A stretch of DNA of 64,000 bases from assembly GCA_025594325.1 (NCBI GenBank), contig JANHCV010000001.1:2604001-2668000 (forward strand), read 5' to 3'. The stretch is from Blastocladiella emersonii ATCC 22665 (lineage: Eukaryota > Fungi > Blastocladiomycota). Positions 25,812 through 33,851 of the stretch are shown here, piece after piece. The first letter of the stretch is position 1; every line of letters begins with the position of its first letter. A model generated the notes under the pieces. It saw only the letters and a list, made by a program, of their open reading frames with translations, did no database searches and had not been told where the DNA came from. A program made the position numbers and the translations under genes.

Positions 25812-26722
25812 GGTCGATTCGTCGGGCGTGAGGCTGACAGAGCGAGGAGAAAGAGAGGGTGTCAATCAAAAGCGGATACTCGTATGTATCATATCTTACA
25901 TGGACGGGTGCGGGTTGAGGGAGAGGAGAGGAGCAAGGGTGAGCGGGGAGCGAAGAACGACGGACGGGAGCGCGCGGGCACGCGAACGTGCGGCCGGGGA
26001 ACAAGAAAGAGGGACGGGTCGAGTCGGCGTGGGAACGAGGCAGGGACCACGGTGAAGCGGAGACGGGCACAGCGAGGCAGAAGCACGGCCGGGGGAGAGG
26101 GGACCGCCCGCTTTTATAGCGAGGGGATCGGGGAACGGACAGAGGCCCCACGCTGGCCAGGGTCCAGGGACGTGGCTGACGCTGCAACTGCCGCGGGCAA
26201 GCCACCGACGGGCGGACGCGAGCACAGGCTTCGAGATGCTCGGATCCCTCACCGCTCCGGTCGCGTTCCTACGTTCCCGCGACCACGACGGCTTCTCTGA
26301 CAACGCCGGCGGTCTCCATCCTCGTCCTCGAGGCCGTTGCAGCAAGTCAGGTCGCTGGCAACACCAGACGCGACTGAGCCTACGCGCCAAGGCTTGACGC
26401 GGCTGACGTGAGGTGCGGGTGACTCAGCCTCACATGATGCGTTGCTACGGGCTCACTGTGGCGCAGCGCGTCCCCGCCGCTCCCGCGCCTTGATCGTTGT
26501 TCGCGTAAGTGGTAAGGAGGTAACTGTAAATGCGCCTTCGCCAGGGAAACAGCAACCGAAGGTCTCTGCTGATCGAAGAGATGTTAAAACGCGCATTGAA
26601 ATGGCGTGATGGAACATGATGGCAAGTCGCGTCCCGTTTCTGGCGTTCGGCGCGTCGTCGTTGCTCGAGGCCGCTCCGCCTCGTCTCCTCCTCTCACGAC
26701 CCTAAATTGCATGTAACTTGCC

Positions 26723-28529
26723 ATGTTATCGAGCAACTCACCGCCGTCGCAGCCGTTGCAAAAACTGCGCGGAACCCCACTCGCCACTGGGCGTCCGCGT
26801 CCCCGCGTCCTGGGCGCGACTGCGGCGTTCCCCGAAGCGTTGCTCGTCGACGACCATCCACTTCTTGCTGTACCATCTGGCCAAGAGGACACATACTATG
26901 ATCGCCACAACATCCGGTCCGTGTCCAAGGGCGCGACCACGTTCCGGTCGCGTGCCCTCCGTATGGAGATGCTTGCTCTCATCACGGACGGTCTGAAGCT
27001 CCTCGTGTGCCGGCCTACCGCAACCTTTGACTCGCTAGACTATCTGGGTTCGCTCGTGTCCAATGCAATCGTTACATCGCCGAATAACGAGCTCCTCGAC
27101 CGTCGCCGCGAGTTCACCGATACCAATTACTCTGATCGGCACTCCATCCGCTCAGCACTTACTGCCGATGCACTCTCGAGTGGTCGCACGCTTGCTCAGC
27201 TGCTCGACGACTTGATTGCTTGGTATCTTCGCCAATGCTGCTCCGGGGCCCGAGGTTTCGGCGTTGACATTCCAATCCACCACGCGTCTCGCGGCACGGC
27301 CCGCTACTTCTTTCCCGTGGGGCTCATGATCACTTACAACGGTCGCAGCGATAAGTTCCATGTCGAGTTCAAACCGCTCGAACTCGAACGTGCTCGTCGC
27401 GCCCCGATATCCGCTGCATTACCGCCGGCTTTGCTGCAGCAGCTTGTCCAGCAATCAAGCATTCCGACACAGTCGACAGTTCACCCACCGGGTTCCTCGA
27501 CTGCTTCCTCTCGGACCGTGCCGACGACTCGATCTGCAACGTCCGCGCCATCGGCTACAGCTCTCGTCCAAGACCAGCGCCCGTCAGGTACGTGCTCCTC
27601 TCCTCGACCTACTGCTTCTACACGCGCTGACGACCTCCTGCTCAGTCACTCCACCGACGCCAGCTCGGACCGCGGATACAAAGAGACCCAAGATTACTCT
27701 CGTCGAGTGGAGCGACCCGCCGCCACGCCTTTCGCCAACGAAACGCACCGAACCGTCGACCAAGCGCCGCAAGGTGGAAATCGTCATGGTCGACGCGGAG
27801 GACGCTTCCCCTCTCATCGCTCCTTGTGCGCCTCGCGATCTCCTGCCAGCTGCTCTCATGCCTACTTCTTCGAACTCGGCCGCTACGACGGTGCAGGCCG
27901 CAGCGAACGTTGCACCACTGACGGATCTTGCCGCCGTTCCCGCTCTGCCTCAACCCAGTGCTTCGACCAGCAACGTCGAACCGCAGGACTCTCTCGCTGG
28001 CGCGTGCAATGCCCTGGCTGGTAGTTCCAGTGCCTCGAATGTTTTGCTTCCCGACAAGTCGCCCAGCAAGATCAAGATCAAGCTCGAGCCGATGGTGGCC
28101 GCTTCGCCGACGGTGTCCTCTCGCCCGGCGGTCATCGCGCCTTCTGCTTCACATGCTTCGAGCTCGGATCCGACTGCGACTCGCCTCCCGCTTCCCTTCA
28201 CAGCGCTTACCTGCATCGCCTCCGCGTACGCTGCAAACGACCGCCAGAAGCAGATTGCGGCCGCAAAGCACATTGCTTCTGCCGTTCACGGCCGCGACTG
28301 GGAGCTGTCAAAGCTCAAAGACTTTATCCAGCTGTACGCGGCCATCGACCAGCGGACTCCGCTCGACCAGGCCATGGCCACGGAGCTCGCCGACGTGTAC
28401 GACCTGTCCGGATTCAGTGTCGAGCGCTGCAAGGTGGCGGTCGACGAGGTTCTCGGTCATCTCACCATGCAGGACGCTAGCTTCTGGAACGTCGTGGCAA
28501 TGTGCACGGCGATGCTGCCCTCACCGTGA
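26723..28529 (+). CDS. Hypothetical protein, island paralog A (~582 aa after removing intron 27588-27645)
   Basis: GTACGT donor, GCTGAC branch site and CTCAG acceptor join ORF 26723 to ORF 27360 in frame. Globular N-domain, Ser/Pro linker and helical C-domain; AT-richer codon usage than neighbours. Confidence 0.7.
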
Positions 28530-28807
28530 CCTAATGAGCCGTTCGAACCCTTGACTTTGACAAACTAGCGCACACACACGACTTGAAAATAACATATCTG
28601 ATTCTGCTGGATCCGGAATCGTTACTCTGGTTCATTGAGCTGTGAAACGCGCCTGGGGACGCGATGGTCATGGGCACGCGCTCGACACCTGACGGATGAT
28701 TTGAAGCTCGCGAAGCGACGCGAGGCGCGTTTCCCGCGGTCGTCCGCGCCGCCTCTGCTCCTCTCTAGTCTTTGCGCCAATGTCAAACGAATGAAAAACT
28801 TTATGCA

Positions 28808-30427
28808 ATGAGCTCTACCGGCCCTGATCCGCACAATGTCGCCGCGGCGAAACCCCTGCGGACACACCTTGTCCCCGCAGCCCTCCAGCTGGGTTTCGAG
28901 CAACTCATGGCCGTTCCACCCGGAGTCGACCCGGCCGAATACTTCAGAACCAACTCGATCGTCGACATGAGCAGCTGGGCGAGCAAGCTGGACCCTCATT
29001 CTCTCATGGACGTGGCACTTGCACTCAGCAAGCCAGAAATCAACGTTGGTCTTGCGAATGTACTCGCTCCGGACGAGGGCACTTTCTCGAACCCCGACCA
29101 CGCAAACACCATGTATGGCTCAACGTGCGTAGTTGGCGTTTAGAAGCCGCCTCACCACGTCTTCCGGTGTTCCCTTGCTGCGGCGGACCCGGTCCATGAT
29201 TGTTTACTTCTCGACGCACCAAGACCTGCGCAACGAAGACTGCGCTCCCAGCTTGTGCGCGACTTTTTCATGCGCTATCTCGCCGAAACGCTCGCTGGAG
29301 CTCAAGGGTTTGGTTCCCTTCAACCCGTCAATCACGTCACTTTTGGTACACGGTGCTACTTTGCAAGCGCCGCACTTAAGGTGGCGCGTTTCTCGACAGG
29401 CAAGTATCTGCTGTCACCGGTTCTCACTCCAGAGTCAATTTCGCTCTCACCTGCTCAAAAAGTATCTGGACCTGCAAGCGGGGACACTTCAAGCGTTCCG
29501 CCTTCCCTGGCCTCGCCTTCACCAGCGGACGTTCCTCCCAATGGTTTGCCTCGAGACGTTATGCAGCTTGGTTCACTGGCTACAGCACCTGCTCGCGACG
29601 CGGATTCGAACGGCTCTCTTTTGTCTCCCGCTCTTGCTCGAGCCGCCGAAAGCAGCTCTCATATCGAGCCGAATTTCACCTCACACGACAGCCCGTTGAT
29701 TGCTCCGGCTTCTCAGCACAAGTCAGCGGCTGCGGCTGCGACCGCGACAACAAAGGTTGTTCTCGATGCAGCCAAGGTTGGTATCCCGCCCGCTTTTCTG
29801 CAGCTTTCTCGAGTGATTTCGCCACCTGATTGCTCGCCTCCGGGTGACGACGAAGCCGTGGTTTCCGCTGCTCCTCCTCGCTCCAAACGGCCTCTCAACA
29901 ACGATGACGAGCTGTGCGAGAATCTGCCAAAACGACCCCGGCCTGTCGCAGTTCCGGGTGACGAGCAGCTTCCCGCTTTACTGCCAACCAAGCCTTCGCG
30001 CACCGCTGTCGCCTCGAGCAGGCCTCCAAGCTCGTCAGCGAGCTTCAATGATTAGCATCCGTGTCCGCACCCAATCATCTCAATTCCGACCCTGGTCACG
30101 ATCGCCAAGGTATACCAGTGGGCGGGTCGCGACTCTACGACACGTGTCGCGCCGCTCATCATTCAATCCGTTGCTGGCCGCGACTGGTCGACGGGAATCA
30201 TTGAGGGCTACATTGGCGCGTTTGCTTCTGTCGAGAAACGCATCCCAACCACCCGACTTGACCGTTCGGGTGCCGCAGGCCTCGCCGATCTCTTTGAGGC
30301 CGCTCACCACGACATTGAAGCGACCATCGCTGCCTTTTGCCAAGCTCAGGCTGGGATGTCCATGTCCGACCTGCACTTCTGGGAGGTGGCGGCAATGTGC
30401 CTCGTTGTTTCCCCCTCGCTGATCTGA
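28808..30427 (+). pseudogene. Island paralog B (~539 codons) with two in-frame TAG codons (29141-43, 30053-55)
   Basis: One continuous reading frame that aligns by eye to paralog A on both sides of each TAG (LMAVPPG, GAQGFG..PVNH..GT.CYF, GRDW, FWEVAAMC). Pseudogene status not certain: introns or readthrough are possible. Confidence 0.6.
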
Positions 30428-30666
30428 GCTGGTGTGCCAGCCGTCCCGCAATACACTATATCCTGCACAGATGATGACTGGCTTTGATCCAACCGAGCGG
30501 ATAGTGCCGAGCAACCAAGGGGTCGTCTCACCAGATCCCCTGCGTCTCACAAGCTCGAACTTGGATGCGAGACGGTCACGTGAGTGGCACAACGCGTCGG
30601 TGCCGACGCGCCTTGACGCCTTTCAGTCTTCCGCTCTCCTAAAGCGCTCTCACCAACGCGATCATC

Positions 30667-31956
30667 ATGTCAGCTCATGCATCATCCCGCTCAGCCACGC
30701 CCGCAAGCGGTCTGAAGCTCAACGACGCCATCAACGGGGCGCTCGGCATCAGCGCTGACGAGGTCGAGCGTGCTCTCTCGCCCGCGCATGGAAGTCACGG
30801 CCATGCCGCTGACCTGTCCGGAGCTGCGACGCCGCCGCGCAAGCACCCGCCTCGGCAACGCGTCGGGTCCACCGCGTCGACCAACGGGACTGGCGGCGGC
30901 GGTGCCGGTGGGCACCACGCCATGTTCCAACTTCCCGGCGAGGACGCGACGACGCCCGGATCTGACTCGATCCTCGACGACGATTCACGCTTTCCGCCGC
31001 CGCTCGAGGAGGAGGATGTCGCTGAGGCGGCACCAGTCCCACGCCCGCCCGCAGGACCACCGACTCGAGCGGCGACGGGGCACGCTGTCGGTGGTGGTGT
31101 CGCGGTGGGAGTGGCGGCGGGTCGGACGGGTGCACGACTCGCTCGTGGCAAGAGCCCTGGTCCGGGGTCCCTGTCGACGCGGCACAACGCGCCGGAATCG
31201 AGTGCATGGACCGCGGCGGTGGTCGCCGCTGCAACGACGGGCCACCGCGACGGCTCAACCGTCTCGTCCAGCGAGTCGGTGGCGGCGAGCGACGCACACG
31301 CTGCGCAGCGGCCGATGGGTACCACCGCTGCCGTCCTGTTTCCCGGTGCTCCGCTGCTCGGCTCAAAGTCCCGCTCGCGCCAGCCGACGACGACCAGTAT
31401 CGCGAGCGCGGTCCTGACCTCGAGCATCCTCGCTGGTGACGGCGACACGGCCTCGATCGCGTCGTCCGACTCGCTGTCGCACGATCCGCTGTCGCACTCG
31501 GGCAACGGGTCCGTCGCCGCTGCTCCCGTGCACCATTCGCGCATCGCGACAGTCGCGCCGACGCTCGCCGACCGCGCGCACGCGGCGCGGACCGAGCTGC
31601 ACTCGCTCCAGGCCGCGGCGCAGGCGGCGCTGACCGAGCTCGAGCACACCGAGTCGGCACGGCGTGATGCAGAGGCGACGCGGCAGCGGGCCGAGCGCGA
31701 GGTCGAGACGGTCAACAAGAAGATTGAGGCGACGCAGCGCAAGCGCGGCGAGCTCGAGGCGCTGCTCGAGGCGCTGCGCGCGGAGAACGACGAGCTTGAG
31801 GAGCAGCTCAACGAGACGGCGCAGTTCCTCATCAAGCACCAACCTGACGACGGCGGCAGCGGTTCGCCCGCGGCGGTGCCGGGTCTGTTCAGTGGGGCGA
31901 GTGGTGGTGGTGGGACGGGAGCGAGGAGCCGGCAGGCGTCGCAGCTGGCTTCATAG
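30667..31956 (+). CDS. Hypothetical protein, disordered N-terminus with C-terminal coiled coil
   Basis: Host-like codon usage; heptad-rich segment ARTELHSLQAAAQAALTELE...LRAENDELEEQLNETAQFLIKH. Confidence 0.65.
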   Translation: MSAHASSRSATPASGLKLNDAINGALGISADEVERALSPAHGSHGHAADLSGAATPPRKHPPRQRVGSTASTNGTGGGGAGGHHAMFQLPGEDATTPGSDSILDDDSRFPPPLEEEDVAEAAPVPRPPAGPPTRAATGHAVGGGVAVGVAAGRTGARLARGKSPGPGSLSTRHNAPESSAWTAAVVAAATTGHRDGSTVSSSESVAASDAHAAQRPMGTTAAVLFPGAPLLGSKSRSRQPTTTSIASAVLTSSILAGDGDTASIASSDSLSHDPLSHSGNGSVAAAPVHHSRIATVAPTLADRAHAARTELHSLQAAAQAALTELEHTESARRDAEATRQRAEREVETVNKKIEATQRKRGELEALLEALRAENDELEEQLNETAQFLIKHQPDDGGSGSPAAVPGLFSGASGGGGTGARSRQASQLAS

Positions 31957-32079
31957 ATACATCTACATTACGTGCTTCATGGTTGCGTTGATTCTTTACA
32001 AAACAAAGTGGCATTGGCCATCAGCTCGCGAGCTCCGTTCGCTCTCAAGTGCCACGAACAATGAACATCCCACTTGTCT

Positions 32080-33087
32080 TCAGCTGTGAGCACCCCAACG
32101 ACCAACAAGTCGTGTTCCCATTTGCGCTGCTGCAAGCGGTGGGGGCTTTGATGGGTCTCGCCCGCGGAACGATCGAGGGAGCAAGCGGCGGTCCATGATC
32201 CTGCCAAACTTGGCCCTCATGATAAGGTTTGTCAAGGTCAAGGATTTGTGTACATAGTACAAGTGCAAGACCGTGTTCTTGTCAAAGTAGCCGTAGTTGC
32301 TGTTGATGCGGTTGATCCCGATGAGCTTGACGCCGACGGGGACGTGGCCGCAGTACTTGCACGGCAGCTTGAACTTGGCCTCGAGCTTCTTGCGGTCGGG
32401 CATGTACACGGGGATGTTGCGGGCGCGTGCGCCTTTGAGAAGGGCACGGAATCGATACCCGACCGGGTCGCGGAGAGTGTGCGCGCGGAACGACTTGCGC
32501 TTCATGTTGTGGTGGCGGATGCGCAGGCCACGGTCAGCGACGAGCGGGGCGCGCATGCGGTCGTTGGTGCAGTCAAGGCAGACGTCGCGCATGCGCGAGT
32601 GCTTGAAGGTGAACTTCTTGCCGTGGTCCTTCATCTTGTGGCACGACGCGCACGACTTGATGGGGCCGACGATTTGCCGGCGGACCGTGTCCGACGTTGA
32701 CGCCCCACCACCGGCCTTTTTGGCGCGCGCGTGGTTGCGGTTGCGCTCCGACGTGCAGCTGCAACATTTCGGGAGGAACGAGTTCTCGGCGGGGATGAAG
32801 TAGGCGCGCTTGAGCGGCGTGATCCAGCGCAGGAAGTAGCACGCCGGGGCGCCGTCGGGCGCGATCAGGTTGAACATGCGCTTGCGCTTTCCGTCCAGCT
32901 TGTTGCTTATGAACTTGTTGGTCTGCGCGAGCGTCGGCTGTGCGAACATGGTGTAGAGATCGAGCGAGTGGCGGGCCTCAGCGCCGGTGCGGAACCAGAA
33001 CACGGGCTCGGCCTTGCGGCACGCAAACGACCGGTTGGTGGCGAGCTTGGGCGAGCACGTGAAGAGGCCAATGAGCTTGTCGTGCAT
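32080..33087 (-). CDS. Phage/giant-virus-type HNH-like endonuclease with NUMOD1-like and CxxC domains; catalytic end degenerate
   Basis: ATG 33087 in CCGCCACCATG context, intronless. FRTGAEARHSL..ISNKLDGKRKR, CASC..CLDC, KGARARNI..LPCKYCG..GINRINSNYGYFDKNTV. Confidence 0.65.
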   Translation of the reverse strand: MHDKLIGLFTCSPKLATNRSFACRKAEPVFWFRTGAEARHSLDLYTMFAQPTLAQTNKFISNKLDGKRKRMFNLIAPDGAPACYFLRWITPLKRAYFIPAENSFLPKCCSCTSERNRNHARAKKAGGGASTSDTVRRQIVGPIKSCASCHKMKDHGKKFTFKHSRMRDVCLDCTNDRMRAPLVADRGLRIRHHNMKRKSFRAHTLRDPVGYRFRALLKGARARNIPVYMPDRKKLEAKFKLPCKYCGHVPVGVKLIGINRINSNYGYFDKNTVLHLYYVHKSLTLTNLIMRAKFGRIMDRRLLPRSFRGRDPSKPPPLAAAQMGTRLVGRWGAHS

Positions 33088-33851
33088 GGTGGCGGTGACG
33101 GTGGTCGCGGTGGCGGTGCGCGTGGGAGGTCGGCGGCGGCGCGCGCGGAGAAGGGCGTGGGGGGTAGGCCAGGTGCGCGCGAGCGGGGCGGCGAAGAGAG
33201 GCGAAGCTGCAGATGACGACCGAGTAGTGATGAGCTGCGCGCTGCTGGCAGGGGAAGCGGCTGAGAGCGCATCGGGCCAGCGGCAAGCGAGCAGCGGTGC
33301 TGTGGCGCTCGAACGCGTGTCACCTGCGCCCGGCTGCGCCACCACGCCTTTAACAGTCGGCCGGTTGCCGGTGCTCCGACCTGCAGACGGCACACCTAGA
33401 ACTGTCGCTGGTCGCAGTCCGTCCAGCAGTCCGTCCGACCATCCGCATCGGCAACGCGCCCGCGTCCCGCTTCGTTGGGCTGGCGCGATCTTCGATGCGT
33501 CCCTGTAGTCTCGCACTGCCGCCATCACTACGCTTCACACTGCTCGAAGGTGATGCTGTGGACTCGCTCGCGAGACGCGCGTATCCAGAACCGTGAATCC
33601 AGGCCTCCGACTCGACTGGGCCACCGTTGGCTGAGCCAAGGGGTACCGGTGCCCCCGCAACGCGCCATGTGATCTCAGGACGCGTGAAGTCGCGAGTGGC
33701 TTATGGCGACTCCTCCCGAGGAAGGGATATACCAATGAGCCAAGTGAGAGAGAGAGGTGTAGATGAAGAATTGATGGATGCATTCGAGTCCGAGACAAAA
33801 TCATCATGTCGCGCGACCCAAACATTCGACATGCCGACAGCCGGGATCTGC

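Follow-up and report, generated by a model that had tools for sequence, protein, structure and literature searches.

The 64,000-nucleotide stretch of Blastocladiella emersonii ATCC 22665 analysed here (assembly GCA_025594325.1, contig JANHCV010000001.1, positions 2,604,001 to 2,668,000 of the forward strand; hereafter the window) carries two adjacent genes, A and B, at positions 26,723 to 30,427. A reading of the letters alone, the original prediction, had described them as diverged tandem paralogs of an unrecognised and undescribed three-part protein family. This description was supported by the analysis. It had overlooked that the pair is not unique, the family being present at eight loci in the genome, and that the two genes are located within a perfect inverted repeat of 5,280 bp. 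On balance, A and B are best explained as members of a small lineage-restricted family that has undergone tandem and segmental duplication and exchange between paralogs, in which A is most likely an intact gene and B is a dead mosaic.

Paralogy of A and B and extent of the family

Pairwise blastp comparison of A and B gave significant matches between their C-domains (E = 4e-18; 31% identity over 109 aa) and between the cores of their N-domains at the GA[RQ]GFG motif (E = 1e-8; 37% identity over 49 aa). The far N-terminus alone gave a non-significant pairwise score (E = 0.75), and this part could be aligned within the family alignment. Every motif that had been quoted for the two proteins was located in the translations or in the family alignment. 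The paralogy claimed for A and B is thus borne out in both domains, and the pairwise alignment, whose lack of significance had been named as the result that would speak against the claim, proved to be significant.

A six-frame search of the genome of the window, using a single protein and domain profiles, identified six distinct genes at exactly eight loci; at E ≤ 10, the same search gave no further member, not even a weak one. Besides A and B themselves, these loci comprise an identical copy of the two in inverted orientation, located upstream of the window; F3 (591 aa), F5 (527 aa), and F6 (483 aa), which are arranged head to tail as a trio on contig 16; and a lone gene on contig 1, F4 (499 aa). 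F3 to F6 are four intact members, each consisting of an uninterrupted open reading frame (ORF) of 483 to 591 aa. BLASTN comparison demonstrated that the window is colinear with the trio on contig 16: A corresponds to F3, the head of B to F5, and the tail of B (29693-30408) to F6. The trio (C16:2483450-2488768) is located approximately 25 kb from the end of its contig and directly adjoins a gene that was read by eye as a carnitine/choline acyltransferase gene, whose GC content at third codon positions (GC3) is 0.97.

All six genes share the same layout, namely an N-domain of approximately 185 aa, a linker of 187 to 264 aa in which Ser, Pro, and Ala each account for 12-17% of the residues, and a C-domain of approximately 115 aa. 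The three-part structure of the original prediction was seen both in the family alignment and in an AlphaFold model of the intact paralog F4, for which the family alignment was used as input. In this model, the C-domain formed a bundle of several helices with a predicted local distance difference test score (pLDDT) of 75-89, and the linker, rich in Ser, Pro, Thr, and Ala, was disordered (pLDDT of approximately 30). Fifteen positions of the C-domain were invariant in six of the six members. The C-domain of A matched the profile with an E value of 4e-54 and was 80% identical to that of F3, with a ratio of nonsynonymous to synonymous substitution rates (dN/dS) of 0.19. Apart from the inverted twin, the members were 25-80% identical to each other as proteins. 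The copies are old and diverged (dS from 0.6 to over 2), and the pairwise dN/dS values of 0.19-0.48, obtained for both domains in all scored pairs, indicate purifying selection.

It had been proposed that neither domain is recognisable, and a match of both proteins to a known conserved single-copy family had been named as a refutation. The family was instead found at eight loci, and no family match was obtained. When five pieces were compared with Pfam, no hit reached E ≤ 1; at E ≤ 10, no hit was consistent across members, and no match was found in PHROGs. A profile search of PDB sequences gave best E values of 0.016 and 1.4 for short stretches only, neither of which is significant. A word-index search of 5.8 billion clusters with the whole of F4, its N-domain region, and its C-domain region returned nothing. 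When an N-domain profile was compared with 1.84 billion representatives using HMMER, no credible relative was found; the three hits at E ≤ 0.001 were long proteins with internal repeats, each matched in 4-13 stretches, and were rejected as summed noise. The feature search of the ESM Atlas gave no usable hit for either domain, and motif scans for the C-domain in metagenome and viral contigs gave no confirmed relative. Fold searches were performed with the full 499-aa F4 model, not the isolated C-domain, as the query. Among unrelated helical proteins, the best Z score of the VIA fold search for the C-domain was 6.1, where Z scores below approximately 13 are uninformative for helical bundles. Foldseek gave nothing at E ≤ 0.001 against PDB and viral models, and the TM-scores in the Atlas did not exceed 0.21 (by model) or 0.33 (by matched structure). 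The profile and AlphaFold/Foldseek checks that had been proposed for the pair consequently gave no relative and, for the C-domain, no fold match above the background.

Reading frames of A and B

In three-frame translation, A is read in one frame from the ATG at 26723 and then in the +1 frame to the TGA at 28529, and B is read in a single frame from the ATG at 28808 to the TGA at 30427, with TAG codons at 29141 and 30053. Contigs assembled from three short-read runs of the source sample matched the A/B stretch without any difference. Therefore, the frame change of A and the stops of B are not assembly errors. The pair had been described as one intact and one interrupted copy. The two in-frame TAG codons confirm the latter, and the former holds only if the segment from 27588 to 27645 is spliced.

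A and F3 showed 71.5% nucleotide identity, and the sole indel whose length is not a multiple of three was a 2-nt gap near 27639, inside this 58-nt segment. The preceding exon ends with CAG. The segment itself starts with GTACGT and contains CTGAC, followed by 11 nt with a pyrimidine-rich run and a terminal CAG. Its length leaves a remainder of 1 when divided by three, and its excision fuses both frames without a stop, giving 582 codons. Three introns of the neighbouring core genes have GTGCGT, GTACGA, and GTACGT as 5' sequences, CTAAC, CTGAC, and CTAAT as branch sequences, and YAG at the 3' end. The published introns of B. emersonii (PMC2773782) are 55-333 nt long, most of them 60-79 nt, and have GT-AG ends and a CTAAC-like branch; the segment of A has such ends, such a branch, and a length belonging to this class. 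At the homologous place of F3, GTACGC, TACTGAC, and YAG were found in a segment of 54 or 60 nt, depending on whether CAG or TAG is taken as the 3' end (locus L003:2325-2384, minus strand; approximately C16:2487811-2487870). The signals are kept between the two segments, the remainder of which is only about half identical. Because the segment of F3 stays in frame, F3 is read as one ORF; the true F3 protein may be 18-20 residues shorter than this ORF. Based on these signals, A is very probably intact, with 582 codons in two exons and a putative intron in its linker.

An alternative, which we consider unlikely, is that A and B are both pseudogenes. In this case, the linker of A would contain a genuine frameshift of 2 nt, and the cassette as a whole would be a decaying duplicate of the intact contig-16 trio. 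This alternative would agree with the change of frame that A shows near 27640 when compared with the continuous ORF of F3, with the clearly dead neighbour B, with a low GC3 consistent with weak selection, and with the occurrence of chance intron-like patterns at about 1 per 10 kb per strand. However, the frame change falls exactly inside the segment that has a consensus 5' site, branch, and 3' site and the right length class, and it is these three signals that are conserved in F3. In addition, the 1.75 kb of A contain no further lesion, and dN/dS between A and F3 was 0.19-0.46. In both domain trees, the branches of A were shorter than those of F3, which argues against the decay of A. Apart from this question, the N-domain of A contains two alike short motifs, DRHNIRS and DRHSIRS (26860-27170), which hint at a possible internal duplication.

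B is a pseudogene. Directly behind its first TAG, the homology goes on in frame. An altered genetic code, in which TAG would be a sense codon, was ruled out: TAG terminates the AMP deaminase gene and the gene for a coiled-coil protein at this locus, and the genetic code is therefore standard. Splicing out of the stops was also rejected, because no intron-like signals were found in B and the first TAG is within conserved coding sequence.

In addition to being dead, B is a mosaic, with the N-domain of one subfamily and the linker and C-domain of another. In the domain trees, the N-domain of B grouped with F4 and F5 (support 94/94), whereas its C-domain grouped with F6 (100/99). Approximately unbiased (AU) tests rejected congruent trees with p values of 0.038 and 0.005, for groups chosen after the trees had been seen. 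The BLASTP matches agreed with this: the N-domain core of B resembled F5 (4e-20), and its distal linker, including a basic cluster, resembled F6 (1e-12). The F5-like match ends at approximately 29396, and the F6-like match begins at 29693 in the DNA and at 29780 in the protein. The C-domain branch of B is three times as long as that of F6. The dS between the N-domain of B and F5 was 1.3-1.8, approximately twice the values of A versus F3 or of the C-domain of B versus F6 (0.6-0.75). Given this inequality of its parts, a simple fusion origin of B, through a deletion joining F5-like and F6-like genes of a trio, was considered and not adopted. B would have been formed by recombination between two subfamilies and would then have acquired two nonsense mutations. 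The positions of these features are listed in Table 1.

Table 1. Features of the A/B locus and of the repeat that contains it (positions in the window)
Feature	Position	Strand	Basis or remark
Inner diverged repeat edge, approximately 79% like the twin arm	26589-26670		17 substitutions and a 5-bp indel in 82 bp; no similarity beyond
Perfect inverted-repeat core, 5,280 bp	26671-31950		Exact reverse complement of C1:2596527-2601806 (string match, arm alignment)
Paralog A	26723-28529	+	Two exons around the putative intron
Predicted exon 1 of A: N-domain (approximately 26723-27340) and first part of the disordered linker	26723-27587	+	ATG-initiated open frame; aligns with the N-domains of intact paralogs; exon end CAG/GTACGT
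Putative 58-nt spliceosomal intron of A (GTACGT ... CTGAC ... CAG)	27588-27645	+	Frame arithmetic and signals conserved in F3
Predicted exon 2 of A: remaining linker, C-terminal helical domain (28176-28526), and TGA stop	27646-28529	+	Open frame
Basic cluster of the A linker resembling a nuclear localisation signal (KRTEPSTKRRKVE), then a short hydrophobic-acidic stretch	27741-27779	+	Pattern scan
Paralog B, mosaic pseudogene: N-domain 28808-29443, C-domain 30074-30424	28808-30427	+	One frame, two internal TAG codons
First TAG of B	29141-29143	+	Family alignment; column is Trp in intact F4 and F5
Interval containing the recombination breakpoint of B, proximal linker	29396-29780	+	Match limits
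Bipartite-type basic cluster of the B linker (RSKRPL ... KRPR)	29879-29941	+	Pattern scan; common to F4, F5, and F6
Second TAG of B, just upstream of the C-domain	30053-30055	+	Translation
Coiled-coil gene, 429 aa, third passenger of the repeat	30667-31956	+	Twin copy C1:2596521-2597810
Outer diverged repeat edge, approximately 70% like the twin arm	31951-32002		15 substitutions and 1 indel in 52 bp; nothing beyond

Inverted repeat containing the pair

A, B, and the coiled-coil gene are the passengers of an inverted repeat whose two perfect cores are separated by 28,864 bp. The read evidence for this repeat consists of collapsed short-read contigs. A unitig from the Illumina reads corresponded exactly to 26671-31950 and had approximately twice the depth of its flanks. 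Its loose end at 31950 matched the flank of the twin letter for letter, and both arms therefore exist. The double short-read depth and the observation of both outer junctions ruled out an assembly artefact as the source of the repeat.

Large palindromes whose arms are kept identical by arm-to-arm conversion include the ampliconic palindromes of the human Y chromosome and the inverted repeats of plastids. The present repeat resembles them in having 100% identical arms, short diverged edges, and a unique spacer. Identical arms with diverged boundaries, the mark of palindromes in concerted evolution, were found here in a core of 5,280 bp and edges of 82 and 52 bp with 79% and 70% identity, respectively. 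The combination of diverged edges and a perfect core suggests an old duplication that has been homogenised by gene conversion. The repeat differs from the known palindromes in that here we infer both conversion and spacer inversion, and in that the spacer consists of housekeeping genes. The cassette formed by A, B, and the coiled-coil gene would have been copied in inverted orientation 28.9 kb away, and its arms would since have been kept identical, probably by gene conversion. The repeat encloses 28.9 kb of core genes, and inversion and gene conversion could potentially take place here. Since the arms are identical, a flip of the spacer leaves the sequence beside A unchanged, and no expression switch is expected from it.

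The core stops 6 bp short of the stop codon of the coiled-coil gene. The genome contains two copies of this gene, one per arm, which differ in the last residue of the protein. The protein has a C-terminal coiled coil, and only sub-threshold coiled-coil matches were obtained for it in Pfam. The spacer contains ordinary core genes, encoding a phosphatidylinositol 4-kinase, two transporters, a lumazine synthase, a GOST-type membrane protein, a malate dehydrogenase, and an AMP deaminase. Just beyond the repeat, an ORF of 482 aa (32080-33528, minus strand) is present that was not duplicated with it; this ORF had no Pfam match at E ≤ 0.01.

Composition, possible role, and classification of the family

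The GC content of the A/B stretch is 59-62%, compared with 66-72% in its surroundings, and GC3 is 0.52-0.70 in all family members, compared with 0.97 in the adjoining AMP deaminase gene. Similar lower-GC stretches, with other long ORFs of weak codon bias, surround the intact members of contig 16 and the one near 4.89 Mb of contig 1. The original prediction had placed the pair in a foreign island. The lower GC content is real, whereas a foreign origin was not upheld: all members share the weak codon bias, and neither relatives nor hallmarks of viruses, bacteria, or transposons were found. Pfam scans detected no transposase, integrase, or reverse transcriptase domain, and the only near-identical copy was the inverted twin. 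An origin of the family from a virus, a transposon, or horizontal transfer would account for the low GC and GC3 and for the short lower-GC islands that hold the family at all loci, and we nevertheless consider it improbable. No relative was present among viral contigs, PHROGs, viral structure models, or the 1.84 billion protein representatives; the genes have no capsid domain, and no terminal repeat surrounds single genes. The age of the copies and the purifying selection on them also argue against it, as do the host-type intron signals of A and F3 and the equally weak codon bias of adjacent unrelated ORFs. The codon usage points instead to a weak bias of young, probably weakly expressed genes, which would explain the island better than a foreign origin.

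A basic cluster was found in six of the six members within the otherwise poorly conserved linker. It has the form RSKRPL...KRAR in F4 and F5, with a different second half in F6 (KRAR after a longer basic run) and in B (KRPR), and the form KRT.P..KRRKVE in A and F3. A short hydrophobic stretch lies beside the cluster, and acidic flanks are present in some members. The classical nuclear localisation signal (NLS) is monopartite, as in the SV40 T-antigen, or bipartite, as in nucleoplasmin. The clusters of all six members fit the mono- or bipartite consensus. The family resembles nuclear proteins with an NLS in a linker in that a cluster of the KRRKVE or KR...KRAR type is conserved there in all members. 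It differs from them in that the likeness is a motif match, and no domain typical of DNA-binding or chromatin proteins could be recognised. Neither a membrane segment nor one resembling a signal peptide was detected; the maximum hydropathy over 19 residues was 1.65, in a short C-terminal helix. A C-terminal tail anchor was considered and rejected, as the hydrophobic run is only approximately 11 residues long and is modelled as packed inside the bundle. The products of the family would accordingly be soluble proteins composed of an N-domain, a disordered linker, and a C-terminal helical bundle. Their most likely role would be that of a nuclear regulatory or scaffold protein, in which the two folded domains would serve as binding modules on a flexible tether.

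A bolder possibility, to which we give little weight, is that the two unseen domains belong to a nuclear system specific to Blastocladiella, in which N- and C-modules are re-assorted so as to pair two binding specificities and the inverted repeat acts as a copy-correction device. If true, the family would be more than a plain orphan family, namely a modular recognition system, and B would be a recorded example of re-assortment.

The least probable explanation is the proposed analogy of A and B to allorecognition, toxin-antidote, or meiotic-drive loci, which had been put forward as speculation and was not sustained. Fungal killer and incompatibility loci include het genes of the HET-domain and NLR types, Spok, with a kinase and a nuclease, and wtf, with multiple membrane passes. 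The family resembles these in that its paralogs are diverged, clustered in tandem, and lineage-specific, and the shuffling of domains among fast-evolving paralogs would also suit such a locus. On the other hand, Pfam searches detected no HET, NACHT/NB-ARC, kinase, nuclease, or toxin-like domain, and the defining membrane topology is missing; the partner B is dead; the number of genes per locus varies (1, 2, or 3), with no conserved two-gene module; and dN/dS was below 0.5 throughout, so that diversifying selection is not indicated at this resolution. We know of no described sexual cycle in B. emersonii, which makes meiotic drive implausible.

Several points count against the explanation of A and B as an intact gene and a dead mosaic of a lineage-restricted family. 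The generic intron pattern (GTRCGW ... CTRAY ... YAG) occurred 13 times in the window, compared with 11.7 +/- 3.6 times in Markov-shuffled sequences, and in a genome so rich in GC this pattern cannot by itself serve as evidence of an intron; what argues for the intron is therefore its exact position, together with the frame arithmetic and the conservation in F3. The identity of the arms could alternatively result from a very recent duplication. The N-domain was modelled with low confidence (pLDDT of approximately 45 with a 7-row alignment and 44.7 alone) and gives no basis for the label of a new fold. In the large collections, the C-domain was covered by the word index and the motif scan only, rather than by a full profile search. 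The protein collections lack the proteins of this genome itself, so that no self-hits are expected and the absence of close kin weighs less. Blastocladiomycota are sparsely sampled, and the family may be an orphan only in the sense of being restricted to an order. As to localisation, judged from the motif, there is about an even chance that the proteins are nuclear, with two binding domains tethered to each other by the flexible linker.

The family is new to the databases searched and is best filed as a lineage-restricted birth-and-death gene family, which would evolve through tandem duplication, segmental duplication, and exchange from paralog to paralog. It resembles orphan tandem families of this kind in having no outside relatives in the data, both tandem and dispersed copies, a mixture of intact genes and pseudogenes, a weak codon bias in lower-GC islands, and folded parts under purifying selection. 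It differs from them in that two separate folded domains are re-assorted among the paralogs and in that one locus is within a perfect 5.3-kb inverted repeat. For an early-diverging model fungus, these results add an unannotated two-domain family to the known genes and correct the gene models (A with two predicted exons, B as a pseudogene, and F3 with a putative in-frame intron). The family is also a clean case of domains re-assorted from one paralog to another. The structural features of note are the hidden putative intron, the mosaic pseudogene, and the perfect inverted repeat; a new kind of biological system is not revealed on the present evidence.

Beside F4, two long ORFs of 783 and 626 aa were found on the minus strand (C1:4892428-4894776 and C1:4894991-4896868; loci L014 and L015). 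Their GC3 values are 0.61-0.66, and they share with F4 a lower-GC stretch of approximately 7 kb. These ORFs may be members of another lineage-restricted family.

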